NCBI RefSeq assembly: GCF_902713615.1
Contig: NC_052162.1
Location: forward strand, 116,674,085 to 116,738,084
Direction: 5' to 3'
Source of the DNA: Scyliorhinus canicula
Taxonomy: Eukaryota
DNA: 64,000 nt
Of this stretch, positions 23,011 to 64,000 are shown one piece after another; position 1 is the stretch's first letter, and every line of letters begins with the position of its first letter. A program made the translations under genes and the position numbers. The notes beneath the pieces are model-generated. The model was not told the DNA's origin. It worked only from the letters and a program-made list of their open reading frames with translations, and searched no databases.

Positions 23011-23161
23011 CTTAAAGACATTGACATCCTTTGCTCCCTCAGCTTGACACGTTTATTTGTCTGGCTAAAAGGATGGTCTCTTTCCTAATGTTCACAATTA
23101 AAGGGCTGGTTTTCCCAGGAGATGGCTGACATTTAAGGGGACAGTCAATAAATATTAGGCA

Positions 23162-23385: not shown

Positions 23386-24524
23386 AATTTAAAATCAGGC
23401 AGAGATATGTCTAGTGTTTCTATATGGTACATATTTAATACAGTATTTATGGTTCTGCAAATAAGTACATTTATTAGAATTTCTAGTTGTGTAATAATGC
23501 AGTTACATTATATATTTCCAGTCTTCTCTTCTGTCAGATGATTATTAGTCTCTGGATTTCTCTTCGACAGGGACCAGTGGGGTCTGAGAGTCATTGAATA
23601 TATTCAAGGATGAGTTAGCTAGATTTTTAATTGACAAGGGAGTCAAGGTTTATGGGCAACAAGTAGGAAAATCAAGAGAAAGCTGAGATGAGGAGGAATT
23701 TCTTCACTGGAGGATGGGGTGAAGCTTTGGAATTCTCTACCCCAGAGGACTGGAACCTCAGTCATCAAGTATTATCAGACTGAGATTGACAGGTTTCTCG
23801 ATATTGAACATACCGATGGGGGATAGTGTGGGAAAATGGTGCTGAGGTAGATTGGCCAATTAGCTCATTTAATGGTTGAGCAGGTTCTATGGGCTGAATG
23901 GCTGAATGCAGCTCCTATTCATTATGATCTGTGTTCTGACAGGAAGCGATGATCATGGGTCTGTCAATCAGCCTGAATCAGCACCTTCAGGAGATTTGGG
24001 AGGGTGAATATTAGATACAGCAGAGTGAGAATGGAGGGAGAGTGTGTGGGATGGAGATTTACAGTATTTGGGGAATGAGAGAGGAAAGAATGTTCCAGAG
24101 AAACTAGAATTGTCTGTTCTGAATTTCTATCCTGTACTGACAGTGATTTTTTTGTAAATTGTTTTTCCAGGATATTAGAAGAGGAGGAATCACAGATAAA
24201 AATTGCAAGGGTCAAATCTCGATCTGACAGTCACTCGATTCTTTGGGACCTGAATATCATCGGCCTTTGAATCTGGAAGGAGAAATGTTTCCCGTTCTGT
24301 AGGCGTCGAAATATTTTAAACATCAGTGTGACTGGAAAAGTACCGAGACACACACACCCGAGTGAGAGTGTTCCAGAGCACTGACTGTGGAAAGAGCCTT
24401 AACCAGTTACACAGTCTGAAAGAATATCACGGCATTCACAGGGGGGAGAGACCATACATGTGGGTTCTGTGAAGTCAAGGCTTCAGCTGATTGCCTGACC
24501 CGGAGAGACACAAAGATTCGAAAT

Positions 24525-43452: not shown

Positions 43453-45677
43453 TTTTTTTAAATAAACATTTGATTGAGGTATTTCATTGGCATTGTAACA
43501 GCAACAAAATAAACAATGTACATAACAAGGAAAATATTAACCTCGTGCAAATACCACCTCCATCTCCCACAGGTCCAACAATTACTTACCCCCCTAATCT
43601 ACGCTAGCCTAACCCCCCCCCCCCCCCCCCCGTTCTGCTGACGATTAGTTCTCCGCAAGGAAGTCGATGAACGGTTGCCACCTCTGGGCGAACCCCAGCA
43701 GAGACCCTCTCATGGCGAACTGAATGTTCTCCAGGCAGTGGAAGCTAGCCATGTCCGAAAGCCAGGTCTCCGATTTCAGGGGCTTTGAGTCCCTCCATGC
43801 CAACAATATCCACCTCCGGGCTACCAGGGAAGCAAAGGCCAGAACATCCGCCTCTCTCTCCTCCTGGATTCTGTGACACCCCAACAATCACCACCTCTGG
43901 ACCCATTGCCAGCCTCGTATTTAATACCTTGGACATGACATCAGCAAACCCCTGCCGAAATCCCCTCAGCCTTGGACATGTCCAGAACATGTGGACATGG
44001 TTCACTGGTTCACTGGCTTCCCCCCCCCCCACCCATTTCAGACACCTGTCTTCTACCTCAAAGAATCTGCTCATCCGGGCCACTGTCATATCAGCCCAAT
44101 GAACAACCTTAAATTGGATCAGGCCGAGCCTGGCACATGTTGTGGTTGCATTGACCCACTCAGCACGTCCGCCCAAAGGCTCTCCTCTAACTCTCCCTCC
44201 AGCTCCTCCTCCCACTTTTGCTTTGGCTCCTCGGTCTGCGTCTCCTCCAATCCCATAAGCTCTTTATATATGTCCGAGACGCTCCCCTCTCCTATCCATC
44301 CTCTGGAAACCACCCTATCCTGAATACCCTTAACAGCAGGAGTGGGAAGGTTGGTACCTGCTTCCGCAAAAAGTCCCGTACCTGCAGATATCGAAATACA
44401 TTTCCCCCCTGCCAATGCAAACTTCTCCTCCAGATCCCTCATACTCGGGAAGCTTCTTTCTATGAACAAGTCCCCCATCCTCTCAATCCCCGCTCTCCGC
44501 CAAATTCGGAACCCCCCGTCCATCCTCCTTGGGGCAAAGCGGTGATTATCTCAGATTGGGGACCATATCGATGCCCCCTCTGCTTCCACATGTCTCCTCC
44601 ACTGCCCCCAGACTCTCAAGGCCGCCACCACCACGGGGCTGGTGGAGTACCGTGCCGGCAGGAATGGCAGAGGCGATGTTACCAACGCCCCCAGACTTGT
44701 GCCCTTGCAAGAAGCCGCCTCCATGCGCACTCACGCCGGCTCCCCCCCACCACCCACCTCCTCACCATGGCTATATTCGGCAGCGCCAGCCCACCATCCC
44801 CGCGACTCCGCTCAAGCATTGCCCTCTTCACCACACACACACACACACACACACCACCACCCCCCACAATAACTTTACTGACCCACATAAAAAAGGACCG
44901 CGGGAGGAAGATGGGGAGGCATTGAAAAACGAATAGGAATCTTGGGAGGACCGTCTTTTTTACCGTTTAAACTCTGCCCGCCAGGGACAACGGGAGCACA
45001 TCACATCTCTGGGAATCCTCCTCCATCTGATCCACCAGCCGGGCCAAATTCAATTCATGAAGCCTGTCGCAATCCCTCGCCACTTGGATACCTCGGTCCC
45101 TGAAACTGTCCCCGGCCACTCTGAACGGCAGATCCCCCAGTCGCCTCTCCTGACTTCTCACCTGGACCACAAACATCTCGCTCTTCCTCATAGTGAGCTT
45201 ATACCCCCAAACCGTCCTGGATGACCTGCATCAACTGCTCCGATGGTCGCAGCGTCGCCACCCCAGGGGTCCGGTCCTCGGCCATGCTGTCTCCTGCTGC
45301 AGCTTCAACACAGCTCTTGGCTAACTTTTTATTTCTGCCTTTTCATGCACTTCTGGTTCTTTGCTCCGTACACTAATACGTGGAAACGGTGCCCAATTGC
45401 CTCAACCTTCGAATTCACCGTTTAAAACCAAAAAAAAGTCCAGGGGATAGGTCCAAAGGTCCGACCGGAGCGGGAGCCACCAAATGTGCGACTTACTCCT
45501 TCATAGCTGCCACCGGAAGTCTCCCTCCATAGCCGCCACCGGAAGTCTCCCTCCATAGCCGCCACCGGAAGTCTCCCTCCATAGCCGCCATAGGAAGTCT
45601 CCCTCCATAGCCGCCATAGGAAGTCTCCCTCCATAGTCGCCACCGGAAGTCTCCTTCCATAGCCGCCACCGGAAGTC
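43453..45677 (-). mobile_element. Internally deleted L1-clade LINE (5' UTR joined at ~45210 to late ORF2 and 3' end)
   Basis: ORF2 C-terminal motifs, poly(A) at ~43453, and 5' end gacttccggtggcggctatg. Confidence 0.85.
45496..45676 (-). repeat. 26-bp L1 5'-terminus repeated 7 times
   Basis: Unit ctccctccatagccgccaccggaagt. Confidence 0.95.
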
Positions 45678-45754
45678 CAGGGTAGGTGAATTGGACACTC
45701 TACATTACCCCTTAATTGGAAAGAATGAATTGGGTACTCTAAATTTAAAAAATC

Positions 45755-46035
45755 ACTCCTGTCTCTGCGTGGAATGGACCCACATTGGTCTTTGCTAATC
45801 TTTTCCTTTCACATTCCTATAGGAGCTTTTCAAGTCAGTTTTTATGTTTCTCTCCAGTTTGCTGTCATATTCTATTTTCTCTTTTTCAGTTTCTTGGTCC
45901 TCCTTTGCTGAATTCCAAAACAAGTTCTCAATACTCAGGCTCACTACTATTTTGGCCACTTCATGAGTCTCCTCCATTGATCCAATGGAATCTTTAACAT
46001 TTCTTGTTCGCCACGGTTTCATCACTTTTCCTGTT
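45755..46035 (-). mobile_element. CR1 fragment, paralog of 12085-12215/15790-15945
   Basis: Direct sequence match. Confidence 0.8.
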
Positions 46036-46299
46036 GGGTTTTTACTCCTTAAAGGAATCTATGTTTGTTGTATTTGTGTGAAATAAAAGTCGCCAAAGTC
46101 CCAGAGGACCAGAGTCTGCTTTGCCCTCTGAGAGAGAATGAGAGCTGACTGGTGGTGATTGAATCCGACGGTCACCACAACTCAAGCAAGGGGCAATGCT
46201 GAGAAGGTGAGGCCTTCATGGATAAGCTCAGCCGGTACGGGTGTTGAATCCCCTGATGTTGGAGTCGCTTTGCATCACAAACCAGCCAACTGAGCTAAC

Positions 46300-46962
46300 T
46301 CTCCCTTGTGCAAACTCATTGGTGTTTCCGCAGGTTGGATAACATGGTGATGGCCTTCTCACACTGAGAGCAGGTGAATTGCCTCTCCCCAGTGTGAACT
46401 CGCTGGTGTGTCTGCAGCCTGGACAAATGAATGAATCCCTTCCCACACTGAGAGCAAGTGAACGGCCTCTCCCCAGTGTCAACTCTTTGGTGTTTCCGCA
46501 GGCTAGATAATTGACTGAATCCCTTCCCACACAGAGAGCAGGTGAACGGCTTCTTCCAAGTGTGATCCAACCGGTGTATCTGTCGCTGGGACAAGTGAGT
46601 GAATCCCTTCCCACAAAGACAGTAGGTGAACAGCTTATCCCCAGTGTGAACGCAGGCCAGGTGGATCACTGAATCCCTTCCCACACTGAGAGTAGGTAAA
46701 CGGCTTCTCCCCAGTGTGAACTCGCTGGCGTGTCTTTAGATGGGATAATTGAGTGAATCCCTTCCCACACTGAGCAGTTGAACGGCCTCTCCCCAGTGTG
46801 AACTCGCTGGTGTGTCTGTCGGCAGGATAACACAGTGAATCCCTTCCCACACTGAGCATAGGTGAACGGCCTCTCCCCTGTGTGACTGCATCGATGAATC
46901 TCAAGTTGAGATGGTGCATTGAAACCCTACCCACAGTCCCCACATATCCACGGTTCCTCCAT
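46300..46962 (-). pseudogene. C2H2 ZNF copy 4, frameshifted, ~8 degenerate fingers
   Basis: [11 protein letters not shown] start, multiple indels, C->Y changes, and a TGA at the end. Acceptor at 47273/47272. Confidence 0.85.
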
Positions 46963-47399
46963 ATTTTGTGTCGCCTTCTGTCTCTCCAGGTCAAAAAATT
47001 AGTTGGAAGTCTCGTTCACCCGTGTCACTCCTCGCTGTGAATGGCGCAATGTTATTTCATTCGGGGGCGGCAGAAGGGGGGGGGGGGGTCTCAGTGCTTT
47101 TCAAGTCACAATGATGTTTAAAATCTTTTGAGGCTGTCAGATCGGGCAAACATTTCTCCTTCCCTTCTAGACTCAAAGGCTGATGATAGTCAGATCCCAA
47201 GGAACCTGGTGACTGTCAGATCGAGACGTTACATTTGAGATTTCTGTCTATAATTCCTCCTCTTCTCGTATCCTGTAAAAGGAGTTTACAAAAGGCATCA
47301 CAGTCAGTACAGGATAGAAATTCAGAACAGATAATTCTAGTTTCTGGAGAACATTCTTTCCTCTCTCATTCCCCAATACCGAGTCTCTAATGCCTATTT

Positions 47400-48268
47400 C
47401 TCCCTGTCTTCAGGGAGCGGTCTTGGAGGGGCAGAGTCTGGGAGCAGTCAGTATAAAGACCTTTCCTCGGGAATTCACCGCCAAGTTTCCAGGGAGCGGA
47501 CTGAGGGGTCCGGATTTTCGGAGCTGAAGAAAGAAACCTTTCCTTGGGGATTCACGGCCTACTCGCCAGGGTGTGGATTAGGAGCCGGAATTTTAATACC
47601 TTCCCCCGGGGATCTGCGGCCGAGTCTCCAGGCAACGGAATCGGAGCTGGAGAGCCGCCTGGTCCTCCAGCCAATCAGAGAGAATGAGGGGCGAGGCTGG
47701 AGGACTAAGACAGCCCCCTGGTCCTCCAGCCAATCAGAGTGAATAAGGGGCGGGACTGGAGAACTGAGAGTCGCTTGGTCCTCCAACCAATCAGAGTGAA
47801 TGAAGGGCGGGACTGGAGGACTGAAAGCCGCCTGGTCCTCCAGCCAATCAGAGTAAATGAGGGGCGGGGTCTAACCTTATTATGTTCCCTCCCCATCCTC
47901 CACTCACTCCACAAATATTTTGGGCATTAACTTCAGGTCCTGGGAAAGAACCAGAATCAGGGAGCTGACAACTAATCATCGGGGTTTGCGGCTCCACAGA
48001 GTATTTCCAAATCCTCACACCCACCTCCTTAGTTTCGCTCGGGCTCTCCGAAACGAAGTCCCATTAATCTGAATGCGCATGCTCCAAACACCGACAACCG
48101 GTGATGCGCATGTGCAGAGAAGAGCCCACCCGCCGACTTCCTGTTGAGTATTAACCAATAGAAAGAGTGGGCCCACCGGAAGGACTCTGGTCCTTCAGCC
48201 AATCAGAGCTTTGTGTCATGCAGATTGAGCTTCACACAGACTAATAGTACCTTCTCTGTCCAACATCT
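47400..48268. promoter_or_regulatory. Bidirectional promoter for ZNF copies 4 and 5, including 4 x ~58-bp CCAAT+GC-box repeat
   Basis: CCAAT at 47671, 47730, 47787, 47844, each followed by GGGGCG(G/A)G-like sequence. X-box 47624-47636, TGCGCATG at 48074 and 48105, donor at 48269. Confidence 0.72.
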
Positions 48269-48489
48269 GTGAGTAAAACACTTTCTTTTCTCCCCTTTTC
48301 CATTTCTTTTCTCATTCTCACCTTCAATTGGTCACTTGCAGCAACTGAAGGGAAAGGAAGTGAATCCAGGGAGGGTGCAGACTCTGGAAAGCTTGGCCCA
48401 GGTCTCTCTCTCTCTCTCTTCAAGACATTGACATCCTTTGCTCCCTCAGCTTGACATATTTATTTGTCTGGTTAAAAGGATGGTACCTT

Positions 48490-50853
48490 TTATGATTCAC
48501 CGGACCCGAGAACATGAAGCTCACCTGTCTGCCACACCCAAGAACAAAACCACACAACCTAGTCCCAGACAGATGTGCCCTGTGGACCACCTTGAACTGA
48601 GTCAAGCTACACCGAACACAGGAGGAGGTCGAGTTGACCCTGTACAGTCTCACTCCACACCCCCTCCACAGAAACCAGATCCAATTCCCCCTCCCACTTC
48701 CTCCTCACCTCACCCAGTGGAGCTTGCTTTGCAGACAGGATCTGACTGTAGATATCTGAAATCCTACCCTCACCCACTTCAGCAAGAGATAGAATCCTAA
48801 TCATCAGAGTGGGCGGGGGAGCTAAAGGAAACGCCAAGATCGTCTTATGTAGGAAATCACGCATCTGAGAAAATTAGAGTTCGCGAGTTGTAATTTTTTC
48901 TACCAGTTCATCAAAACCAATAAATCTGCCGTTCACAAACATGTCACCAAACCTCTCCAGCCCTTCCCTCCAGGACCTCAATGGAAATCCGTAGGCACAA
49001 AGCGGTGAGTCCCACAGAGAGGGGCCAAGAACAATATCTCATCCATCGTCGAGTCTGAGTCCATGGCCACCACGCACCCCAACAAAACAGACCAAACAAC
49101 AAGCTGCAGTCACCGTCAATAAACCTTCCCTATCCCCGAGCTCCCCGCCTCTCATTAAAACCACAACCAAAAGCCCGAAGAACACCCCCAAACCCTTAGC
49201 TCAACAATCCTTAACCCCAAACAGAACCAACGCACTCAGCCCATTATCTAAAACCTAGACTATGTTAATGAGCTGCAGTTACCCCCACCACTTCGCTCTC
49301 ATTAACTACCTTCTTCAGCTCGCAGGGCAACTCTCTCCCGGGGCATATAAAACTGAGTAACCATGACCTGCAACCCCTTCTCCCCGCCTGCACCCAACTT
49401 TAAATAAAGGAACCCCCCCCCCCCCACAAAAATAGTAAAATACAAACTGGTACAAGAAACCCCAACAAGACCCCAAAACCACAATCCCTCTCCAATAACA
49501 ACAAGACCCCATATATAATACAAAATATACCCAGCCTGAGCTTCCTCACAAAAGCATCAGCATCATCCAGCGCCTCAGAAGTAGTGATCTTTTGAATTAA
49601 AACTCACTCGGAGGTGTGCGGGTAAACCGCCCCAAACCGAACTCCACGTATGAAAAGTGTAGCCTTGGCCTTGATAAATGCCGCCCTCCTTTTTGGCAGC
49701 TCCGCCCCCTGATGGGGCCTGATGGCACGGCTCTCCCATTTGTAGTTACGGTGATCATTCGCCCACCTCAGGACTCGTTCCTTATCCCGGTAACTGTGGA
49801 ACCTGACGGTTATTGCCCGAGGTGGCTCTCCTGGGTGAGGTTTCTGACAGAGCGAGTGATGGGCCTGATCCACCTCGGGAGGGAACAACTGCCCACCCTC
49901 CCCACCATCTTCCCAAACATCCTGGACGTGTATTCAGTCGGGTCCGGGCTCTCCAATCCCTCCGGCTGCCCCATAACGCGCGAAGAGTTTGTCTCCTGGA
50001 GCGATTCTCTAAGTCGCCTACTTTGGCAGAGATTTGTTATTATCAGCCAACAGACCATCTCAGCCTCTAAAGAGACAATCCGCTCGCTCTTCATCGAAAC
50101 AGCCGCCCGGTGCCCTGCAACCCTTTACTGTTTCGTCCATTTTTGCCAATATCGATCGAATAGGAGCTGGGGGCTCCTCGATTGATATTGGGAGATCCTC
50201 GGAGATAGTCGGCTGTTGCTAAGATGCCCATGAGCATCTCAACTGACAACACTATAACTTTCGCTTCGGCAGCAGCCGCCGCTATTTTGTTTCCAATGAG
50301 CCTGGAAAAGAATCTGAATCGGATGACGATTCTTTGCTCGCTGGCTTCTTCAAACTTGGTTTCTTGGACATTAACACAGTATGGGAGCTTTATCCCATTG
50401 ACAAATTTGAAATATCCCCAAACCCCCTCAAATACCGGGTGAAAACTGGCAGCACCGTAGCATTGTGGATAGCACAAATGCTTCATAGCTCCAGGGTCCC
50501 AGGTTCGATTCTGGCTTGGGTCACTGGGTCACTGTGCGGAGTCTGCACGTCCTCCCCGTGTGTGCGTGGGTTTCCTCCCACAGTCCAAAGATGTGCAGGT
50601 TAGGTGGATTGGCTATGATAAATTGCCATTGGTGTCCAAAATTGCCCTTAGTGTTGGGTGGGGTTACTGGGTTATGGGGGTAGGGTGGAGGTGTTGACCT
50701 TGGGTATGGTACTCTTTCCAAGAGCTGGTGCAGACTCGATGGGCTGAATGGCCTCCATCTGAACTGTAAATTCTATGAAACTATGAAAACAAAGTCCCCG
50801 GATGAGAGCTGCCTCATATGCGGCCGCTCCTGACATGTCGCAACCGGAGACCC
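48490..50853 (-). mobile_element. Degenerate internally deleted L1-clade LINE in ZNF copy 5 intron (contains a SINE at 50448-50785)
   Basis: ORF1 (PPRAITVRFHSYRDKERVLRWA), ORF2 C-term (SLTQFKVVHRAH), 5' end ctccggttgcgacatg. Confidence 0.8.
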
Positions 50854-51265
50854 TGTCTGTTCTGAATTTCTGTCCTGTACTGACACTTATGTCTTTTGTA
50901 AATTGTTTTTACAGGATATTAGAAAAGGAGGACTAACAGACAGAAATCTCAAACTAAACGTCTCGATCAGACTGAGTCACTTGATTCATCAGGGCCTGAA
51001 CATCATCGGACTTTGAATCTAGAAGGAGAAATGTTTGCCTCGTCTGTCAGCTTGAGAAGATTTTAAACATCAGTGTGACTGGAAAAGCACCGAGACACAC
51101 ACACCCGAGTGAGAGTGTTCCAGAGCACTGACTGTGGAAAGAGCTTTAACCAGTTATACAGCCTGAAAAAACATCACACCATTCACAGCAGGAATAGACT
51201 GTTCTGTGTGTGAACAAGGCGTGAACTGATTGTCCGACCTGGAGAGACATAAGGAGACCCAAAAT

Positions 51266-52526
51266 ATGGAGAAACGATGGGAATGTGGGGACTGTGGGAA
51301 GGGATTCAGAGTCCCATCTGCACTGGAGATTCATCGACGCAGTCACACTGGGGAGAGACCATTCACCTGCTCTCAGTGTGAGAAGGGATTCACTCAGTAT
51401 TCTGACCTGCAGACACACCAGCGAGTTCACACCGGGGAGAGGCCGTTCACCTGCTCTCAGTGTGAGAAGGGATTCAGTCAGTTATCCAGTTTGCGGACAC
51501 ATCAGCGAGTTCACACTGGGGAGAGACCGTTCAACTGCTCTCGGTGTGGGAAGGGATTCATTCAGTTAATCAGCCTGCAGATACATGAGCGAGTTCATAC
51601 TGGTGAGTGGCCGTTCACCTGCTCTCAGTGTGGGAAGGGATTCATTTCCTCATCCAACCTGCAGATACACCAGCGACTTCACACTGGGGAGAGGCCGTTT
51701 ACCTGCTCTCAGTGTGGGAAAGGATTCATTTCCTCATCCAACCTGCAGATACACCAGCGAGTTCACACTGGGGAAAGGCCGTTTACCTGCTCTCCATGTG
51801 GGAAGGGATTCACTCAGTTATCCCACCTGCAGATACACCAGCGAGTTCATACTGGGGAAAAACCGTTCACCTGCTCTGTGTGAGAAGGGATTCACTCAGT
51901 TGATCAGCCTGCAGATACACCAGCGAACTCACACTGGGGAGAGGTCGTTCACCTGCTCTCAGTGTGGGAAGGGATTCACTCGGTTAGACAACCTGCAGTC
52001 ACACCAGCGAGTTCACACTGGGGAGAGGCCGTTCACCTGCTCACAGTGTGGGAAGAGATTCACTCGCTTATCCCACCTGCAGAGACACCAAAGAGTTCAC
52101 ACTGGGGAGAAGCCATTCACCTGCTCTCAGTGTGGGAAGGGATTCACTCATATGTCCAGCCTGCAGACACACCAGCGAGTTCACACTGGGGAGAGGCCAT
52201 TCACCTGTTCTCAGTGTGGGAATAGATTCACTTTGTTATCCAACCTGCGGGCACACCGTCGGGTTCACACTGGGGAGAGGCCATTCGCCTGCTCTCAGTG
52301 TGAAAAGGGATTCACTCGGTTATCCAACCTACAGAGACACCAGCGAGTTCACACTGGGGAGAAGCCATTCACCTGCTCTCCATGTGGGAAGGGATTCACT
52401 CAGTTATCCCATTTGCAGGCATATCAGCGAGTTCACATTGGGGAGAGTTTGTTCACCTGTTGTGAATGTGGGAAGGGATTCCGTGATTCATCGCACCTGC
52501 TGAGGCACGAACAAGTTCACAAGTGA
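51266..52526 (+). pseudogene. C2H2 ZNF copy 5, 15 fingers with a 2-bp deletion at ~51877 (truncates to 7 fingers)
   Basis: tgctct--gtgtgagaag versus consensus tgctctcagtgtgagaag. ORFs 51230-51883 and 51585-52526 join across it. Acceptor at 50914/50915. Confidence 0.85.
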
Positions 52527-53170
52527 TTACAGGGGTTGGATTTTGCTGTTATTGTTTATGTTCTGTATTACATCCAGGACTGCATTTTGGTCATTCTGAC
52601 AGTTGGTCAATGGGGATGGTTGGAGAGATTCTTCTGCTGGACTGGCCGGTGTCACGACTTTGACTCCAGTGGGCTGACGTTCTTTGAGCCTTGTTGTGAA
52701 TACCTGGTTTCACATTTCACAAGGATCAGAGATTGAAAGTTGGTTTGGAAGTTGGAAGATGTTTCCTTCCCATTTCTGTTTGGATCCCCCTAAAGCATGC
52801 CACCTTGCCATGGAGATGGGCAATGGAGGGTACATGGTTCTTTTGTTTAATTTATCTCTGTGTTTCTTGCAGAAGAAAATTATCAAGGTATAGGGCAGGT
52901 TATCTGACATGGACTGAGAAACAACATTAAATGGTGTGATGGGAGATGGGCAATAACTAATATTTCTGGGGATTGGTTAGCTCAGTTGGCTGGATGGCTG
53001 GTTTATGATACTGAGCGACACCAACAGCGTGGGTTCACCTGCCGTACCGGCTGAGGTCATCCGTGAAGGCCCTGCCCCCTCAACATTGCCCCTCGAGTGA
53101 GGTGTGGTGACCGTCAGATTAAATCAGCACCAGTCAGCTCTCTCTCTCTCTCACGCAAAGGGGAATGCTC

Positions 53171-53584
53171 TGATGGAATTCTGACAATGTACCAGTCAGT
53201 AACAAGGTTAAGATACGGGAGTTATGTATACACAAGACCCAAGGACGGTCGATGAGGGGATCTGGAAGACATCATGAGTTCATGACTAACCCCCTAGCTG
53301 TCCATGAGCTGATCACGCAGTTCCCTGCTGCCCAGTAACCACTTTCATTGGATCTACCAGTCAATATGTGTCATCTATAATCATTGTGATTGGATCGTGT
53401 CCGGCTGAGTTGGGCTGACTAACTATTTGAAATTGTATAAATGATGATGATTCCCTTTGTTCAGTGGAGATGTATCTGCTTTTACCCAGAGGCTTACTCC
53501 CCGCCGGTGTTACAACAATAAACCATTTGATGTTTGAAGCAGATCTGAATGTCGAGGGATTCTTTTGGATTCTTTCCCGCTCAC
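53171..53584 (+). mobile_element. Probable solo LTR (retroviral/LTR-retrotransposon)
   Basis: TG...CA ends, TATAAA at ~53437, AATAAA at ~53517. No TSD found. Confidence 0.5.
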
Positions 53585-53585
53585 A

Positions 53586-54945
53586 GGAGCATAACCTACT
53601 TTTGTATTCAATTCCCCACAATAAACAATAACATTCTATTAGCTTTCCTAATTACTTGCTGTACCTGTATACTAGCCTTTTGTGATTCATGCTCTTGGAC
53701 ACCCAGATCCCTCTGAGTCTCAGAGCTCTGCAATCTTTCACCATTTAGATAATAAGCTTTTTTATTCTTCTGGCCAACACGGACAATTTCACATTTTCCT
53801 ACATTATTCTCCATTTGGCAGATTTTTTCCCACTCACTTAACCTATCTATATCCCTTTGTAATCTCCTTATGTCCTCTTCACAATTTACTTTCCTCCCTA
53901 TGGGGGCAGCACAAGTGGATAGCACTGTGGCTTCACAGCGCCAGGGTCCCAGGTTCGACTCCCCGCTGGGTCACTCTCTGTGCGGAGTCTGCATGTTCTC
54001 CCCATGTCTGCGTGGGTTTCCTCCGGGTACTCTGGTTTCCTCCCACAGTCCAAAGACATGGTGGTTAGGTGGATTGGCCATGATAAATTGCCCTTAGTGA
54101 CCAAAAAAAGGTTAGATGTGGTTATTGGGATAGGGTAGAAGTGAGGGCTTAAGTGCGTTGGTGCAGACTTGATGAGCCGAATGGCCTCCTGCACTGTGTG
54201 TTCTATCTTTGTATCAGAGAAGCAGGCCATTCAGCTCATCAAACCTACTCTCCCATTCAATACAATCATTCACTTCATTGCCTTTTTCCCCACACTATCC
54301 CCATCTCCTTTTGAAATGAAATGAAAATCACTTATTGTCACAAGTAGGCTTCAATGAAGTTACTGTGAAAAGCCCCTAGTCGCCACATTCTGGCACCTGT
54401 TCAGGGAGGCTGTTATGGGAATCGAACCGTGCTGCTGGCCTGCCTTGGTCTGCTTTTAAAGCCAGCTATTTAGCCCAGTGTGCTAAACCAGCCCCTTGTG
54501 TTATTGGTAGTTAGAAACCTGGCAGTCTCTGCTTTAAACACACTCAATGACTGAGCTCCCACAGCCCTCTGGGGTAGAGAATTCTAAAGATTCACAACCC
54601 TCTGAGTAAAGAAATGTCTCCTCCGAGACCGGTCCTAAGTGGCTTCCTCCTTATTTTGACATTGTGTCCCCTGGTTCCAGACTCTCCAACCAGGGGAAAC
54701 ATCTCACCTGCACCAACCCTGTCTATTCCTTTATGGATTTTGTAAGTTTCAATGAGATCACTTCTCATTATTTGAAACTCTAGAGAATACAGGTCAGGTT
54801 TCCCCAATCTCTCCTCAAAGGGCAGCCCTGCCATCCCTGGAACAAGTCTGGTGAATGTTTGTTGCGCTCCCACTCTGGCGATAAGGGCAGTAAAACTGTA
54901 CTCAGTCCTCCAGCTGCAGTCTGACCAAGGTTCTGCACAACAGGT
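53586..54945 (-). mobile_element. CR1 fragments with nested SINEs (53902-54205 +, 54313-54495 -)
   Basis: RLQRDIDRLSEW...GKCEIV...RDLGV and DLIETYKI...TRGH. Confidence 0.85.
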
Positions 54946-54949
54946 ACAT

Positions 54950-55550
54950 TCTGGTCGGTCTCACCACTTTGCTTCCAGTGGGGCTGATGCTCTTTGAGCT
55001 TTGGTGTGAATGTTGCTGCTGAAATGATCCACAAGAGATAATGAAGGACATTTATTTTGTCCTGGATAGTATGGGGGAGGCGGTGACCTTGTGGTATTGT
55101 TGCTGGATTAGTAATCCAGAGACCCAGGGTAATGCTCTGGGGTCCCAGGTACAAATCCCGTCAGGGCAGATGGTGAAATTTGAATTCAATAAAAATTTGG
55201 AATTAAAAGCCTAATGATGACCATGAAACCATTTTGAACCCATCTGGTTCACTGATATCCCTCAAAGAAGGAAATCTGCCCATCCTTACCCAGTCTGGCC
55301 CACATGTGACTCCAGACCCACACAGATGCGGTTGACTAACTGTCCCTCACTGAAATGACCCAGCATGTTTAAGGGCAATTATGAATGGGCAACAAATGCT
55401 GGCCCAGCCAGCGATACCCACATCCCAAGAAATAATATTTTATCCAACCACGACAGGTAGATCTAAAATAAATACATTTGTCTCTGTTCCATTGAGTCTA
55501 CAGCACAGGGCCAGGCCAGTCGGCTCAATTGGTCTCTGACAGTATTTATA
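54950..55550 (+). pseudogene. Orphan ZNF 3' UTR/flank without fingers
   Basis: Matches 1540-1773 (split by the repeat at 55075-55430). Confidence 0.75.
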
Positions 55551-55619
55551 TCAGCTCCAATAAACACGTGGTGCTGGAGCATCTCGGTGTTGCTCTTTTA
55601 TAACCGCAGTGTGTGCTTA

Positions 55620-56346
55620 CCCCGTATGGTGGACAAATGATCACACAAGTATTTCAGTTCAATCACAGTTTATTTATTAGATACAAGGTTATATACTTAA
55701 GTAATCACGCGTTCGTGCACACTAAGACTATAACTATCAATTTAAATGACCTTGACTTAACTTCCAAATGACCGGCTGGTGTAGGGCAGATATGGCCTTA
55801 TCTGTTTCCTCACTTATGGCGGCTGCAGTTCGAGTAGGTTGCCTGTGCTTGCTGGTCGTCCTACGGTAGATCTCACGGGTCCATGAACTTGGCTGATGTA
55901 AGTAGCTGTACTGCAGTCAGAGGTCAGGTGCAGAGCCGGTCCAAGAGAGAGAGAAATGATGGCCGCACTGCCTTTTAAACAGCTTAAGTTTTCGCCAACC
56001 CTTTCGTGGGTGGTTTCTGGGTCACTGTCCATCAATTCCTCAGGGCTCCACCCTCTGATCGTTCACATCCAATCAGGGGCTGATACATCACTTCTGGGGT
56101 GGCAGTCAGTGGCTAATCCTGGGAGGGCTCCGAGCAGGGCCTTGGTGCCGTTCTGTCTGGAAGATGATGTGATGGACAAGATTGTCCATTGTTCCTTTAA
56201 TTGCCTTTCAATGGCCCATTTGCAGCTGTGAGTTTCTGCATAAGTCTGGGCTGCGGTTTGCAAATATACAAACTGCAGCTTGTCTGTGTCCCAAGCCTGG
56301 CCACACCATCATTCTTTGCGACATTTTAGATGGCCATATAGGTAAC
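55620..56346 (-). mobile_element. Possible LTR
   Basis: TGTTA start on the minus strand and AATAAA near the other end; resembles 5840-6164. Confidence 0.35.
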
Positions 56347-57036
56347 AGTGATCATAATATTATAGGGAAGTCAATGTTTATTCATTTTAATAGCTTTTGT
56401 TAGTTATGTTCAGTTATCACAGAATCATGGTATATGAAACAATTCACTCAATCCGAAATTGCACAATGTGAGTCTCTGTCTTCAGGTGCACTCGTCCTTG
56501 ACAAACGACTTGTGCCATATTGTCTGAGGCCAAAGTAGGTTCAGTTTTATGGTTTTACCACAGGACTAGTGCTGAATGAAAATCTGTTACATTTTATTGC
56601 AGGATTTGGGGATACACGTTTCTTGTAGTTTAATTCTGTCAATGCTGGAGAAATTCTGTGTCTTAAATTGTGTTCACTTTTCAACTTGCAGCAAAGTTGT
56701 CACTTTCCTTCAAATTCGACAACAGATTTTCTCCACTAGTGTGGGTTTTATTCTCAGTTTCTGTAATGGTGTTGTGGTTATGTCATTTCTGTGACTTATT
56801 TCTCAGAAATATGTAATTTATGAATGAAAATGGTATTTTGTAATGTGTGTCTTGTTACTTAAACTTTAACAAACCAATCATCTTTATGGATTTATTTTCT
56901 GTGTTCAGTAGGAATTACTGTATTAGTTTAGGTTTGTGTATCTTGTGTACTTTCAGTTATTTATATTTAAGTAACTTGCTTCAGTCATCAGCAGTCACTA
57001 AGAAGTTACACATGACACCTAAAGATGTATCATCTC

Positions 57037-57320
57037 AGCACGGTGGCACTATGGTTAGCACAGCCTCTTCACAGCGTCAGAGACCCGGGTTCAATTCTGG
57101 CCTTGTGTCACTGTCTGTGTGGAGTTTGCACGTTGTCCCTGTGTCTGCGTGGGTTTCTTCTGGGTGCTCCAGTTTCCTCCAACAGTCCAAAGATGTGCAG
57201 GTTAGGTGGGGTTAGGGTGCGGACTGGGCCTAGATAAGGTGTTCTTTCAGAGGGTCGGTGCAGACTTGATGGGCTGAACGGCCTCTTTCTGCACTGTAGG
57301 GATTCAGTGGTTCTATGGTA
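57037..57320 (+). mobile_element. HE1-like SINE
   Basis: SINE head, core and tail. Confidence 0.85.
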
Positions 57321-57815
57321 TCAGTTAGGATGATGAGCCTGACGAATATTAATCATGAGGAAGTGACACCACAATGAGAAAGTGACATCACACATCAGCA
57401 AGGTGACCGATATCCTTCAGAGTCCAATCAGACATTGATCGTGCCCCATTTAACCAATCAGGAACTGATCATGGGCTGCTTGGGCCAATCAGAACCACAG
57501 GTTCACTACCATCAGACCATGTGTAGAGGTAATTGCTGGAAAGGGTTAATGAGCTACAATTCTCTGGAGCTCGACACGCAACACAACATGAAGTAAGAGG
57601 ATGGACTTCAGTCAACAGAACAAGAGATATCGCCACAGTCACCCAGAAGTCGCGAGCTGGTGATCCAGAGTGAAAGGACTGATCCACTGCCTTGGTTGAG
57701 TATTGTGATTGAATTGGCAAGTCAATTAAAAGTAGAGGTGTCGGTTAAATTTAGGAAGGGACATACATATTATATATTAGTTGAGTGCCTGGGTCTGTTA
57801 TAAACACAGGACAGC

Positions 57816-58035
57816 GGGCAGCACGGTTGTGCAGTGGGTTAGCCCTGCTGCCTCATGGCGCTGTGGTTCCAGGTTTGATCCCAGCCCTGGGTCACTGTCT
57901 GTGTGGTGTATGCACATTCTCCCCGTGTTTGGGTGGGTTTCGCCCCCACAACCCAAAGATGTGCAGGCTAGGTGGACTGGCCATGATAAATTGCCCCTTA
58001 ATTGGAAAAAATGAATTGGGTGTTCTAAAAATGAA
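57816..58035 (+). mobile_element. HE1-like SINE
   Basis: SINE head/core; ataaacacagga is duplicated on the flanks (TSD). Confidence 0.85.
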
Positions 58036-58099
58036 AAAGATAAACACAGGAGAGCTCATGAGCAAGTAGTCCAGGACGTGTAGCACTTTCTGATGGGGA

Positions 58100-60372
58100 C
58101 ACCGGTCTGGAGAGGATTTGGTTGCAGTTTGAGCATGAGAGGGACTTAAAAACATGAAGATGTGGGAAAGGGAAGAAAAGATAGAGAGGGAGAGGAGAAG
58201 TGAGGGAGGGAGAAGAAAGAGAGAGAGAGAGAGAGAGAATTACGGTTGGAGTTAAAGGCAGAAGTGAGGAAAGTTAAAAAGGAGGAGTAACCCTTCCCAG
58301 TCCAAATCCTAATGGGGATATTTTTAAATTTATACAGGCCCTACCAAAATTTGAGGGGAAAGATGTAGAAATATTCTTCATGGCATTTGAGAAAATAGCA
58401 ACTCAAATAGAGTTGATGAAGGAAAAGAGAGCATTCCTCATGCAAAGTAAACTGATGGGGAAGTGCAGGAAGTTTATACTTCCCTGTCAGAGGGGCTGTC
58501 TCACGGTTACAACAAGATAAAGACTATTCTGGGTGTATTTCAATTAGTTTTGGAGGCATTGAGGCAAAAGCTTTGGAATTTAAGGAAACAACAAGGACAG
58601 ACTGAAACTGAATTTGAAAAGGTTAAACAGGACAATTTTAATCAGTGGGTATGAGCATCGGGTGTTGAAACCAGCTATGGTGCTCTCAGTAAAATCATTC
58701 TCCCAGAAGAATTTAAGAATTCAATAACTTCTGTGATAAGAATCCACACTGAAGACCAAAGGGGGATGACCGCTAGACAAGCAGCAATAATGGCTAACCA
58801 TTGTGAGCTGATCCATAAATTTAAATCTTTGTTCCGTCAGCCCCATAATTTGGTTAAGGATAGGAAGTGGGAGAGTGAAAGGAAGAGAGGTAGCCAAGGT
58901 AAAGAATAGATAGCTGGGAATGCTCGGAGGTCGTCTCCTCAGACCAGGAAGGAAGGGACTGAGCGTGGAGGTGAGACTCAAAGGTCTCAGTGTTACCGTT
59001 CCAATAAAGTGGGAAGCATTCGTACAGCCTGTTGGACGTTGTGAGGAAAGCCCATGAGACTTGTTCAGATTCATAAGGAGGATTCTGAACAGGGATCAAA
59101 AGTGGAGAATAGCACAGAGCAGACAGTAGCTCTAAGTGAAATTAGGAGACCTGAGGTAAACTCTGCTGTGGAAGCAGGTGTGGTGAATGAGGTCGATGAG
59201 AGATATGCAGGGCTTTGATCTGAGAGGAAGATCACCCCATTTTCATCAAATGATGGAGCCAAACCCAAAATTATTTCAAGGGTCACAGGTCCTACACAAA
59301 CTCTCTTACTGGAGAGGGATTTGTGTTTTCCTCTGAAGAGTTCAATGAAAGCTAAGGGACTGGATTCTCCGCTGTCGAGATTCTCCGTTTCACCGGCAAC
59401 CCGGGGAATTCCCAATGGCGTGGGGCTGCCCACAATGGGAAACCCCATTGGCCGGCTGGTGAGATGAAGAATCCCGGGGGCCCCCTGCAACATATTTCTG
59501 GTATGGCGGGACAGAGAATCCTGCCCAAGGTATTGGTGAATGGGATAAATGGAGATTATATCCCAGTTCCATTGTATAAAGTACAATTGGAGTGTGATTT
59601 ATTGTCAGGTCATCTGGTTGTCAGAGTGGTTAAGAAGTTGCCTGTAGACAGAATAGACTTACTTTTGGGCAATGATTTGGCAGTTGTGAAGGTTGTAGCT
59701 TCACCCATGATTGCAGAGAGTCTGAGGGAAGAAAAGGAGACAAAACAGTTCCAGGAACAGTTTCCAGATGTTTTTCCGCATTGTGTGGTGACCTGGGCAA
59801 TGGCTAAACAAAGTTCATCACCAGAGATTAAAGTCACGCCACAATCAGATGGTAGAGCAGCCAAAGCTATCCTTGAGAATGAGGATAATTGTGGGGAAGT
59901 ATTTGCTAGGACTTCATTAACTGCGGCCCAGGACGCAGACCCAGAGTTGTGTAGATTAGCACAGTTAGGTCTCATGGAAGTTGAGGCTGAAATGGCTCCA
60001 AAGTGTTATTACATTGAGAACGGAGTTCTGAGGAGGAAGTGGAGACAGCCTCATATACCTGTGGTTGAGGAGTGGATGTTTGTTCATCAGATATCCCAAA
60101 TATTGTGGGAAATACTGCGGGTAGCACGAGATACCAACGGCAGGACTTGTGGAAATTCGGAAAACCCAGGCATCAGTCAACAGGCATTCTTCCTGGCCAG
60201 GACGGCAAAGAATGTAGTGCGATTCTCTCGAATTGGTCGTACCTGTCAGGTAATAGGTAAACCACAACACAGGATTAAACCCGTGCCTTTAATACCCAGA
60301 CCAGTGTTATAAGAACCGTTTATTCGGGTATTGGTGGGCTGCAGAGGATCATTGTGTAAAATGAAGGCAGGG
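58100..60372 (+). mobile_element. Degenerate Gmr1-like Gypsy: SCAN-like gag, zinc knuckle, protease, integrase N-term
   Basis: ALPKFEGKDVEIFF..FEK; EALRQKLWNLRK...IILPEEFKNS; CYRSNKVGSIRTAC; IISRVTG (DTG decayed)...DLLLGNDL; then directly AHEIP...RTCQVIGKP...[10 protein letters not shown], so integrase follows protease. Confidence 0.82.
59357..59526. mobile_element. Harbinger-type MITE (170 bp) with 3-bp TSD AAG, inserted in the Gypsy protease region
   Basis: ggactggattctc...gagaatcctgccc TIRs. Removing it restores atg aaa gct aag gta ttg. Confidence 0.8.
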
Positions 60373-61481
60373 CTGAGCGGCCTCTCCCCTGTGTGAACTC
60401 GCTGATGTCTCTGCAGGTTGGATAATTGAGTGAATCCCTTCCCACACTGAGAGCAGGTGACCGGCCTCTCGCCAGTGTGAACTCGCTGGTGTGTCTGCAG
60501 GATGGATAATTGAGTGAATCCCTTCCCACATTGAGAGCAGGTGAATGGCCTCTCCCCAGAATGTACTCGCTGGTGTCTCTGCAGGGTGGATGTTTGAGTG
60601 AATCCCTTCCCACATTGGCAGCAGGTGAATGGCCTCTCCCCAGTGTGAACCCGCTGATGTTTCTGCAGAGTGGATGAATGACTGAAACCCTTCCCACACT
60701 GCGGGCAGGTGACTGGCCTCTCCCCAGTGTGAACTCGCTGGTGTCTCTGCAGGGTGGATGAATCACTGAATCTCTTCCCACACTGAGAGCAGATAAATGG
60801 CCTCTCGCTGGTGTGAACCCGCTGGTGTGTCTGCAGGGTGGAGGAATCACTGAATCCCTTCCCACACTGAGGGCAGGTGAATGGCCTCTCCCCAGTGTGA
60901 ACTCGTTGATGTCTCTGCAGATTAGACGACTGAGTAAATCGCTTCCCACACTGAGAGCAGGTGAACGGCCTCTCCCCAGTGTGAACTCGCTGATGTGTCT
61001 GCAGGGTGGATGAATCACTGAATCCCTTCCCACACTGAACACAGGTGAACGGTCTCTCCCCAGTGTGAATTCGCTGATGTGACTGCAGGCTGGATAATCG
61101 CATGAATCCCTTCCAACACTGAGGGCAGGTGAACGGTCTCTCCCCAGTGTGAACCCTTTGGTGTATCTGTAGGTTGGATGACTGAATAAATCCCTTCCCA
61201 CACTGAGGGCAGGTGAACGGCTTCACCCCAGTGTGAACTCGCTGATGTCTCTGGAGGTTGGATGAATTACTGAATCCTTTCCCACACTGAGAGCAGGTGA
61301 ATAGTGTTTCCCCCGTGTGAACTCGCTGGTGTGACTGCAGACAGACTAAATGAGTGAATCCCTTCCCACACACAGAGCAGGTGAATGGCCTCTCCCCAGT
61401 GTGAATGCGTCGATGAGTTTCCAGCGCAGATGGGACTCTGTATCCCTTCCCACAGTCCCCACATTTCCAAGGTTTCTCCAT
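60246..61481 (-). CDS. C2H2 ZNF copy 6, 13 intact fingers plus ~43-aa tail from antisense Gypsy integrase DNA
   Basis: [13 protein letters not shown]...HTGERP|[10 protein letters not shown]...LPIT*. Acceptor at 61842/61841 and donor at ~63198. Confidence 0.88.
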
Positions 61482-62609
61482 GTTTTGTTACTCCTTGGGT
61501 CTCTCCAGGTTTCCTGGTCAGTTGAAGCCTCGTCCATACACAGAACACGTGTACAATCTCTCCCCGCTGTGAATGGTGTGATGTTTATTCAAGCTGTGTA
61601 ACTGGTTAAAGCTCTTTCCACAGTCAGTGCTCTGGAACACTCTCATTCGGGTGTGTGTGTGTCTCGGTGCTTTTCCAGTCGCACTGATGTTTAAAATCTT
61701 TTGAAGTCAACAGATCGGTAAACCATTCTCCCTCTGGATTCAAAGACCAATGATATTTAGGCCCCGATAAATTGAGTGAGTCTGTGAGACCGAGACATGA
61801 TGTTTGAGATTTCTGTCTGTAATTCCTCCTCTTCTAATATCCTGTAAAACTGTTTGGAAAAGATATTGCAGTCAGCATAAGATTGAAATTCAGAACAGAC
61901 AATTCTACTTACAATGGAACATTCTTTCCTCGCCCATTCCCCCAAAGCTGTAAATCTCCATCCCACACACTCTCCCTCCATTCTCACTCTGCTGTATCTA
62001 ATATTCGCCCTCCCAATTCTCCTGAAGGTGCTGATTCAGGCTGATTAACAGATCCATGCTCACTGCTTCCTGTCCTGGATACGGAAACCATAACAAATCG
62101 GAGTTGCAGTCGGCCATTCGGCCCATCGAGCCTGCTAACCATTCAATGAGATCATTGGCCAATCTACCTCAGCACCATTTTCTCACACTATCCCCCGTAT
62201 CCTTTGATATCTTCAATATCTAGAAACCTATCAATCTTTGTCTTGGAAAGACTTGATGACTGAGGCTCCACAGTCCTCTGGGGTACAGAATTCCAAAGCT
62301 TCACAACATCCTTGAGTGAAGAAATCCCTCCTCATCTCAGCTTTATTTTCATTTTCCCACCTGTTCCCCATAACCTTCTTCAATCAGAAATCTATCCAAC
62401 TAATCCGTAAAAATATTCAATTACCCTCGCCCTCCCTGTGGAAGAGAAATCCAGAGACTAACAACCATCTGATGGAAGAGATCATTGGAAATATATAACA
62501 GTTATTATACTATATTAAACAGGTAGAAATAATAATAAATGTGCTTTATTACAGAACTCTGAATAATATATCGAATGCATACCATATAACAACACTAGAC
62601 ATATCATAC

Positions 62610-62925
62610 GGGGTGGCACAGTAGCACAGTGTTTGGCACTGTTGCTTCACAGCACCAGGGTCCCAGGTTCGATTCCCAGCTTGGGTCACTGTCTGTGTAG
62701 AGTCTGCACATTCTCGCCATGTCTGTGTGGGTTTCCTCCGGGTGCTCCGGTATCCTCTCACCAGTCCTGAAAGACGTGCTTCTTAGGTAAATTGAACATT
62801 CTGAATTCTCCCTCCGTGAACCCGAACAGGCACCGGACTGTGGCGACAGCGGGCTTTTCACAGTAACTTCATTGCAGTGCTAATGTAAGCCTACTTGTGA
62901 CAATAATAAAGATTATTATTATGAT
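62610..62925 (+). mobile_element. SINE in ZNF copy 6 intron
   Basis: HE1-like head with a gcttttcacagtaacttcattgcagtg...(att)n tail. Confidence 0.85.
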
Positions 62926-63198
62926 TATCTCTGTCCGATATTAATTTACTGTCACCTTAAATGTCAGCCATCTCCTGGGGAAACCAGCCCTTTAATTGTG
63001 AACATGAGGAAAGAGTCCATCCTTTTGGACAGACAAATAAATGTGTCAAGCTGAGGGAGCAAAGGATGAGAGAGAGAGACCCGAGTCTGAACCCTCCCTG
63101 GATTCACTTCCTTTCCCTTCAGTTGCTGCAAGTGACCAATTGAAGGTGAGAATGAGAAAAGAAATGGAAAGGGAGAGAAAAGAAAATGTTTTACTCAC

Positions 63199-63575
63199 AG
63201 ATGTTGGAGACAGGAGGAGGTTTCAGTCTACGTGAAGTCCAATCTTCAATCACTCTCATTGGCTGCAGGACCAGAGTCCTTCCGGTCGTCCAACTCTTTC
63301 CATTGGTCAACACCAATACTGGACGGTCAGGAGGTGGTCTCTCCCTCGCACATGCTCAGTTCACCTTCTCCCTTGGACATGCGCAGTCACTGGCCGGGGG
63401 GAATGAGGTGAGCGGCTTCTCGCTCTCGGCGGAGACGTCAGCCGGTTGCCTGGAAACGTTGTCACGAGGAAGGAGAACAAGAGTGGTGACCCGGCTGGGA
63501 GCCTGCGCCGAGACTGATTCCTATTGGCTGATTCAAGCTCTCACACAATTACAGGTTCTGGTTTCCCCAGTAGGT
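63199..63575. promoter_or_regulatory. Bidirectional promoter for ZNF copies 6 and 7
   Basis: Reverse complement of 22390-22665: ATTGG boxes, CATGCGCA at 63378, GACGTCA, X-box gttgcctggaaac at 63445-63457. Confidence 0.72.
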
Positions 63576-63604
63576 GGCTGACTTTTCAGGAGACAGTAAA
63601 TTAA

Positions 63605-64000
63605 TATCGGCCAGGAAGCAGTGAGCAGGGATCTGTCAATCAGCCTGAATCAGCATCTTCAGGAGAATTGGGAGAGTGAATATTAGATACAGCAGAGTGA
63701 GAATGGAGGGAGAGTGTGTGGGATGGAGATTTACACCTTTTGGGGAATGAGAGAGGAAAGAATGTTCCAGAGAAACTACAATTGTCTGTTCTGAATTTCT
63801 ATCCTGTACTGACAGTGATACATTTTTAAAACTCCTTTTAGAGGATATCAGAAGGAGAGGATTTGCAGACAGAAACCTCACACCAAACATCAGCTGCAGA
63901 TCTGCTCTATTCATTAGCCTTTAATTGTTGGATAACCATTTGTCTATTCTGTCTGCTGCAGAAAATTTTATGAATCAACATGACTGGAAAAGCACCGAGA
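63605..64000 (+). other. 5' part of ZNF copy 7 (intron module and start of fossil-finger UTR), running off the window
   Basis: Conserved intron block, gatatcagaaggagaggatttgcagacagaaa, tgactggaaaagcaccgaga. Confidence 0.8.

Follow-up and report, generated by a model that had tools for sequence, protein, structure and literature searches.

A constrained 101-nt core within a probable leader of fossil zinc fingers in a catshark gene cluster

In a cluster of C2H2 zinc-finger genes of the catshark Scyliorhinus canicula, the exons that encode the finger arrays start with the remains of three dead fingers, and a 101-nt core within these remains appears to be a constrained non-coding element that is under selection on its nucleotides. 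This finger-sized piece of debris has changed very little at any codon position since the shark superorders arose, and it is better kept than the functional finger adjoining it. The core is thereby a compact and testable candidate for a family-wide control element, and it may represent a natural experiment in which finger-coding sequence functions as nucleic acid, comparable to the human ZCRs and ZNF274 sites discussed below.

Fossil fingers and shared stop codons in the window

The window (the whole stretch of 64,000 nt that was analysed) is a TE-rich cluster of C2H2 zinc-finger genes, whose closest database proteins come from Scyliorhinus and other sharks. An exact look-up of four window ORFs in the protein collection gave no match, and a literature search found no paper on this shark family. 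A BLAST search with the unit 50860-51300 against the window revealed seven copies (78-84% identity, E-values down to 6e-106) which share one plan. A branch-point-like CTGAC, a pyrimidine run and an AG are followed by about 310-360 nt that hold no open frame, and downstream of this stretch ATG-GAG-AAA..TGG..TGT opens a finger array in each copy.

The copies are named here after their first exon base. On the plus strand lie copy 273 (fossil leader 273-594, ATG at 595, core 400-494), which is the most diverged full copy, copy 24171 (leader 24171-24524, ATG at 24525, core 24314-24414) with an intact array of 252 codons, copy 50915 (leader 50915-51265), which is the one named in the earlier note, and copy 63844 (leader 63844-64000), which is incomplete with its ATG beyond the window end. 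The minus strand carries copy 17467 (leader 17130-17467, ATG at 17129, core 17242-17342) with an intact array of 364 codons, the dead copy 47272 (leader 46963-47272, ATG at 46962) and copy 61841 (leader 61482-61841, ATG at 61481, core 61594-61696) with an ORF of 411 codons. Half of the window copies are damaged downstream, as the array of 47272 stops at codon 12, 50915 loses its frame after codon 205 and 273 has a broken finger.

In copy 50915 the AG occupies 50913-50914, 50915 is the first base of the exon, and the ATG follows at 51266-51268. The 3′ end of the preceding intron (50855-50914, plus strand), with the branch-point-like CTGAC, the pyrimidine run and the AG acceptor, contains blocks that are invariant in seven of seven copies. 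This intron end is also kept in the shark Heptranchias, whose version finishes in TTTTGCAG. The 351 nt between acceptor and ATG (50915-51265, plus strand) consist of a decayed coding leader and three dead C2H2 fingers, with the leader part matching the coding N-termini of proteins from Heterodontus (P0284) and S. torazame (P0282). Read in the frame of the ATG, the majority sequence of six copies gives the leader LDLTESLDSGPEYHRPLNLEGE and then three units with C2H2 spacing, F*TSV*LEKHRDTH, FQSTDCGKSFNQLHSLKKH.TIH and CSVCGRGFN*LSNLERHK (asterisks mark stops).

Fossil finger A (51034-51102, plus strand) has lost its F..C..C part and contains the first TGA at 51076-51078; its Cys pair is still legible in Heptranchias (FVCSVCGRRF). 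Fossil finger B (51118-51186, plus strand; FQSTDCGKSFNQLYSLKKHHTIH) exhibits the complete spacing C-x2-C-x12-H-x3-H with the conserved F and L, and its sole change is the replacement of the first Cys by Ser. This codon is AGC (Ser) in five copies, 50915 being one of them, and TGC (Cys) in copy 273 and in Heptranchias. Fossil finger C (51195-51262, plus strand) carries the TGA at 51227-51229. In copy 50915 an 8-nt deletion, which is assigned to this unit, shifts the frame between fingers B and C. Fingers A and C retain the spacing F-x5-L-x2-H-x3-H. A live C2H2 domain is not formed by any of these units, as the frame joined to the array is interrupted by the three shared stops and, depending on the copy, by another 0-4 stops and 0-3 frameshifts that are private. 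Copy 50915 has an array ORF of 205 codons (51266-51883, plus strand) that opens at the linker Met and runs into a premature stop after a 2-nt loss near 51878. The remaining finger array (51884-52526, plus strand) lies in another frame (ORF 51585-52526) and finishes at the usual C-terminus of the family. Judged by these lesions, copy 50915 itself appears to be a decaying family member.

The first of the shared stops, a TAA at consensus codon 48, was found in six of six full copies and reads TAT in the incomplete copy 63844. The first TGA (codon 52) is present in six of the seven copies, namely in five of the six full ones and in 63844, with CGA in 61841. The last shared stop (codon 105 of 118, 13 codons upstream of the ATG) occurs in all six copies covered and is TAA in 47272. 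Private stops and indels in individual copies come in addition to these. The earlier note had described 50915-51265 as three fossil zinc fingers with common stop codons, and this description holds: the coordinates are correct, the majority frame gives the same protein string, both TGA sites show the reported counts, and its deviating "copy 6" and "copy 4" are 61841 and 47272, respectively.

In copy 50915 the shared TAA (51064-51066) ends a uORF of 11 codons (51031-51066, plus strand; MFASSVSLRRF), whose ATG is the old Met of EGEMF in the dead frame. Each fossil leader contains 1-6 short uORFs that differ in length between copies. Start, length and peptide of this uORF are not conserved in the way expected of a regulatory uORF, as only four of the six full copies share the length of 11 codons, 24171 has a version of 5 codons, 63844 lacks the ATG, and the peptides vary. 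The K2P distances around it (0.27-0.35) are neutral-like.

Relatives in other sharks and the linker start codon

Proteins of related sharks document the coding ancestry of the fossil. The Heterodontus protein P0284 has RQDLTESLDSSGSEYHRPLNVEGES as protein, and in P0282 from S. torazame both the leader and an intact finger C are read in the frame of EEKPWKC. The position of the window's M is taken by T, V or E in other relatives. The gene models P0273 (Pristiophorus), P0277 (Mustelus) and P0303 (Chiloscyllium) begin at MEKPWKC, and the called CDS of the latter two is a single block with exactly the length of the protein. Protein searches with the whole array, and with a 62-residue stop-free piece of the fossil against the full library, were uninformative, as generic multi-finger proteins swamped the output. 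A word-index protein search with the same 62-residue piece yielded no match and was uninformative as well.

The comparison of DNA between species is based on one outgroup locus (Heptranchias perlo JAYJKY010001828.1, L001) and on five informative sequences. Heptranchias perlo is a squalomorph and Scyliorhinus a galeomorph, and the split of these two shark superorders dates back on the order of 200 million years or more. The locus of 26.7 kb contains one copy, of which L001:8269-8860 is 80-81% identical to the window copies over about 595 nt, an alignment that reaches from 140 nt of intron across the acceptor and the entire fossil through the first finger. Its exon (L001:8408-8770) forms a single open frame from the acceptor into the array (120 codons), except for two TGAs that occupy the same codons as the two TGAs of the window. 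The codon corresponding to the first shared stop, TAA in the window, is CAA (Gln) in Heptranchias, and the start codon in the linker, ATG (Met) in the window, is ACG (Thr) within ACCACGG.

The presence of the same two TGAs in Heptranchias implies that they are probably at least as old as the deepest node that includes the split of the shark superorders. Yet, both may be parallel hits, which is conceivable because each TGA is a single CpG transition away from CGA, the codon that copy 61841 has at the first site. Judged by the outgroup codons, the TAA and the change from Cys to Ser in finger B are apparently younger than the two TGAs. The Met of the linker likewise appears to be derived, with ACG having become ATG by a C to T change at a CpG. 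In a tree of eight sequences Heptranchias groups with five copies at 92% support, which fits either root. Dating the duplications by rooting this tree was rejected, since its topology is compatible with both roots.

Several observations bear on where translation of the arrays begins. The three whole arrays of 364, 252 and 411 codons stand behind fossils with 6, 3 and 1 private disabling lesions, respectively. These 10 lesions in about 1,050 nt of fossil (approximately one per 105 nt) are opposed by none in the 2,978 nt of the arrays, in which about 28 would be expected at that density. Lesion-free arrays behind lesion-rich fossils argue that translation begins at the linker Met, and every main ATG is flanked by A at -3 and G at +4. 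The window arrays are thus presumably translated from this Met. In Heptranchias the array (exon L001:8408-9670) is open for 300 codons and contains no AUG for 235 codons, so that initiation at ACG or another route must be possible within the family. The linker ACG of Heptranchias stands in a perfect initiation context. In the gene model P0275 of this locus, by contrast, an AG just past the second TGA is joined to an upstream exon (L001:3001-3783) that is unrelated.

That the N-terminal fingers were killed once, with the start moving to a Met in the linker, had been proposed from the window sequence. The lesions common by descent among the window copies, the two TGAs of Heptranchias, the relatives with an in-frame leader, the gene models starting at MEKPWKC and the lesion-free arrays are all in line with this scenario. 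The single killing is less certain, with the TAA being younger than the TGAs and parallel CpG hits being conceivable, and the Met is absent from Heptranchias. If the scenario is correct, a block of N-terminal fingers was lost to stop codons without death of the gene, since a single CpG step was enough to create a start codon in the linker. The family would then be a clean example of how finger genes lacking an effector domain shed fingers at their front end.

A slowly changing core between neutral flanks

The fossil does not evolve uniformly. The core (51061-51161 in copy 50915, plus strand), which reaches from the uORF stop as far as the finger B helix, stands out by its K2P distances and in a Fisher test. 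Among the copies 17467, 24171, 50915 and 61841, K2P amounts to 0.27-0.35 in the first 150 nt of the fossil, to only 0.03-0.05 in the 101-nt core and to 0.21-0.46 in the last 105 nt, as compared to 0.15-0.22 in the coding sequence of the first finger and a dS of 0.17-0.23 in the first two fingers. Between Heptranchias and these four copies the corresponding K2P values are 0.25-0.40, 0.05-0.07 and 0.19-0.39 for the three parts of the fossil and 0.22-0.30 for the first finger. The core changes 5-10 times more slowly than the neutrally drifting fossil, and it does so between species too. Twelve of its columns are variable and 89 invariant, whereas the rest of the fossil has 117 variable and 106 invariant columns (Fisher p=8e-13) and the first-finger coding sequence 52 and 98 (Fisher p=5e-5). 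Even the diverged copy 273 exhibits a K2P of 0.12-0.14 in the core as opposed to 0.32-0.65 in the flanks. In the dead copy 47272 the core is destroyed by a C-run and a loss of 39 nt.

In the finger frame, 11 of the 12 changes within the core are non-synonymous, which rules out coding constraint in this frame, and both CpGs are retained. From these rates and changes, the core appears to be a constrained non-coding element with selection acting on its nucleotides. Gene conversion as the sole cause of its conservation was rejected, since the core is kept between species. About 70% of the fossil (about 250 of 351 nt) changes as fast as synonymous sites or faster, and the uORF and the last stop belong to this portion. 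An exaptation of the dead fingers for control at the RNA level, as had been suggested earlier with divergence at the neutral rate as the refuting outcome, therefore fails for these 250 nt. Exaptation is supported for the 101-nt core only, in which neutral divergence is not observed, and the rates of change are compatible with an action on RNA as well as on DNA.

By triplet phase the 12 substitutions of the core are distributed 10:1:1 (exact p=0.0016), while the flanks are flat and no frame is open across the block. As this bias derives from 12 events and was noticed post hoc, it could be due to chance or could reflect a reader that recognises the sequence three bases at a time. The phase fits the wobble positions of another sense frame or of an antisense frame, both of which have stops inside the block and no AUG in catshark.

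Transcripts, possible roles of the core and related systems

RNA reads from four runs were mapped to 47000-52600. In the stranded oligo-dT run X24 nearly all first mates over the exon map to the minus strand, which corresponds to RNA of the plus strand. Sense depth in this run is 42-46 over the fossil (50927-51300), 5-27 over the array, 3 just upstream of the acceptor (50740-50926), 0 in the intron (48496-50365) and 7.9 at 48309-48495. An unspliced contig of 145 nt bridges 51163-51307. Mature poly(A) RNA of the sense strand thus covers the fossil, with the reads stemming mainly from paralogues that are at least 95% alike: 2,186 of 2,508 reads are 95-99% alike and mostly lie only partly on the stretch, and depth is 1-2 at 51214 and 51568. 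These two observations indicate that the pile-up mostly reflects the conserved cores of paralogues, and copy 50915 may be nearly silent. In sense poly(A) RNA the core is no less abundant than the first finger, and the reads bear only slightly on the expression of copy 50915 itself.

Splicing at 50915 is favoured by the step in depth at the acceptor, by the conserved branch point and AG and by a candidate first exon at 48418-48482 (plus strand). This exon is a 60-nt element which is conserved upstream of four genes in the alignment, ends in AAAAGGATG and lies within the segment of sense depth 7.9. If its ATG is joined to 50915, the product would read M-DIRRGG, in the frame of DISQG in P0282. 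Among the joints listed for 47000-52600 in the four runs none leads from an upstream exon into 50915. The idea that the dead fingers persisted as UTR gains from the sense poly(A) coverage of the fossil, in which most reads belong to close paralogues.

Known RNA families did not account for the core, as a search of 44000-64000 against Rfam 15 gave no match at the gathering score, and the top match at E<1, to an lncRNA, scores 18 bits compared to a threshold of 58 bits and is attributed to chance. A predicted 10-bp stem (GUGUGACUGG/CCAGUUACAC) encloses the block with z of about -2.7 in two copies and single-sequence z of -1.6 to -2.8. Two of the three natural changes in this stem break it and covariation is absent (RNAalifold term +1.36), values that come from few substitutions only, so that the stem is unsupported but may still form. 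Long-range pairing of the core with the intron block described below or with the rest of the transcript revealed nothing common to the copies, and a metagenome scan with 30 invariant bases of the core returned 0 hits. The core starts with TTTAAAC (51061-51067), a classical -1 slippery heptamer five bases before the predicted stem, which is probably a coincidence. Frameshifting by -1 at UUUAAAC was rejected, since the phase leads only to a frame that has no start and Heptranchias reads UUCAAAC. Likewise rejected was A-to-I editing of UGA to UGG, as the 5′ neighbour is a G and no A to G difference at 51078 is among the RNA differences listed.

The following history would unite these results. The ancestor was presumably a terminal coding exon in a shark ZNF family made up of fingers only, and it would have encoded a leader of about 40 codons and the fingers A, B and C ahead of the constant first finger. 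Two codons would have turned into TGA early, as both are found in Heptranchias, and the TAA, the change from Cys to Ser and the indels would have accumulated later. In the catshark lineage the ACG of the linker would then have become an ATG in strong initiation context, and the array ORF would open at this Met. The fossil was apparently retained as an mRNA leader of about 350 nt that carries 1-6 short uORFs, and the sense reads show this in part. About 250 nt of it would be neutral, and the core, reaching from the finger A helix to that of finger B, would be held by selection on its nucleotides. It would most likely act as a cis-element on the transcript, tentatively by influencing mRNA fate or the behaviour of ribosomes past the uORF stop. 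As a whole, from the decayed 5′ part of a coding exon and the new linker start to the leader in the mRNA and the core as a cis-element, this account is considered fairly probable.

The strongest competitor, itself unlikely, is that the core functions as DNA, i.e., as a family-wide docking site for a chromatin or transcription factor, so that a protein would read the DNA of the dead finger as is known for the 29-mer bound by ZNF274 (PMC2999557). Constraint at all codon positions of the old frame, the retention of both CpGs and an RNA fold that shows no covariation would all fit such a site, and a three-base register like the 10:1:1 phase (p=0.0016) is what a DNA-bound zinc-finger array should leave behind. 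However, 101 bp far exceed the reach of a protein with 7-13 fingers, and the phase bias, besides deriving post hoc from 12 events, is absent in the more diverged copy 273. A more specific version, in which the core is a putative recognition site that live poly-zinc-finger proteins read in a three-base register on DNA or mRNA and that has been conserved since the shark crown group, is doubtful, and it is put forward as a speculation of low probability. If true, the core would be a common handle for the co-regulation or silencing of the shark ZNF family and a fossil counterpart, at the 5′ end, of the mammalian ZNF274 site. Of similarly low probability is a fossil that belongs to the intron and not to the leader, with the acceptor just before xEKPWKC or a start further downstream and the core acting in splicing or as an intronic element. 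The dead fingers are indeed skipped in the Gnomon models of Heptranchias (P0275) and Heterodontus (P0284), the Heptranchias array has no AUG of its own, and TTCCAG followed by AGC inside the core resembles an acceptor. Yet the sense poly(A) depth over the core is at least that of the first finger, the contig over 51163-51307 is unspliced, the AG before the Met lies in a purine-rich context, the models from Mustelus, Chiloscyllium and Pristiophorus begin at the Met, and acceptor and branch point of 50915 are kept in Heptranchias.

Very unlikely is the assumption that nothing was exapted and that the fossil is neutral junk carried along by duplication, its core being due to local gene conversion or to a mutational cold spot. 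Clusters of ZNF genes are prone to conversion, and neutral behaviour is indeed seen in two thirds of the fossil as well as in the stops and the uORF. Conversion cannot cross species, however, and the distance between Heptranchias and catshark is 0.05-0.07 in the core compared to 0.19-0.40 in the flanks; moreover, four dispersed copies in both orientations show identical sharp bounds of the tract, and the core is lost in the dead copy 47272. It would be even more surprising if the dead fingers were translated in some lineages by recoding or read-through of UGA, or if a small peptide were made from another frame of the core, and hardly any probability is given to this. The 120-codon frame of Heptranchias that is open save for two TGAs, the lack of an own AUG in its array, and a phase bias resembling wobble in the frame FKHQCDWKSTETHTPE*, for which Heptranchias has an AUG, are in its favour. 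The catshark copies, on the other hand, contain the TAA, frameshifts and more stops, the alternative frame has no AUG in any of them and is closed three codons upstream in copy 50915, no A to G change is reported at 51078 in the RNA reads, and the sequence after the UGAs is not a read-through context.

Relic fingers within ZNF transcripts have been described before, mostly as passive debris 3′ of the ORF. In ZNF252 eleven finger motifs follow a stop (PMC2865497), finger remnants in human KRAB-ZNF genes were termed "relatively common", and ZNF12 contains relics in its 3′ UTR and spacer (PMC6242934). As in the shark, fingers inactivated by stops or by loss of Cys or His stay in these human transcripts outside the ORF. 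The human relics are located 3′ of the ORF or in frame between KRAB and array, whereas the shark relics lie 5′ of the ORF and are in part strongly constrained. Such a position would be open only to a family that, like this one, lacks an N-terminal effector domain which could be lost and has obtained a new start codon in the linker.

For a role of the core as RNA the ZCRs are the closest precedent. These finger-encoding or degenerate units of about 84 nt, with degenerate ones in a UTR among them, restrict polyadenylation and retain ZNF mRNAs in the nucleus of human cells (PMC6242934), which implies that a dead finger can act as RNA. The origin of the shark core from one finger unit fits this precedent. 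The activity of ZCRs is a general property of finger-like sequence and has not been mapped to the 5′ UTR; in the shark, by contrast, one fossil unit is conserved and its finger-derived neighbours are not. The ZNF274 29-mer, a protein-binding DNA site that marks ZNF gene 3′ ends and whose sequence codes for linker and H2 helix of C2H2 fingers (PMC2999557), resembles the core in being a specific nucleotide version of finger-coding sequence common to many family members. It comprises 29 bp in live coding fingers, whereas the core comprises 101 nt of a dead finger near the 5′ end of the exon. The arrangement of short uORFs before a main AUG in strong context is shared with other uORF-bearing 5′ leaders, although the shark uORFs are accidents of the old frame that vary between copies, and the conserved part starts where the commonest of them stops.

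A second block of high similarity was observed in the intron. It comprises about 190 nt, 44-233 nt upstream of the acceptor (17511-17701, 61885-62079, 23940-24128, 63611-63800 and 39-229), and is 91-95% identical in five copies, compared to exons that are 65-83% alike. Heptranchias retains the proximal 140 nt of the block as well (K2P 0.11-0.17). The block contains a CCAAT-like box, an ATG and GTGAGT or GTGAAT, and is conserved on both sides of that GT. It is half missing in copy 47272 and missing in copy 50915, in which a SINE-like repeat (50446-50784) is found at its expected site, 130 nt upstream of the acceptor. The repeat has many relatives in the window and a very high read depth. A contig of 582 nt from run X2 joins 50445 to 50785 with the repeat left out, which indicates that an allele or a close paralogue lacks the insertion.

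The spacers of head-to-head gene pairs contain a promoter-like block with two CCAAT boxes (21845-23155, 48106-48490 and 62928-63486). Between 17467 on the minus strand and 24171 on the plus strand this block forms a palindrome of 1.3 kb, into which a small palindromic repeat is inserted at 22827-22992. A G + C-rich stretch within the cluster contains an element of the LINE type with an ORF of 758 codons (8279-10555, plus strand; RVT_1, E=3e-37), and the segment 30001-32000, with a G + C-content of 0.68 and a GC skew of -0.65, is probably a C-rich simple repeat.
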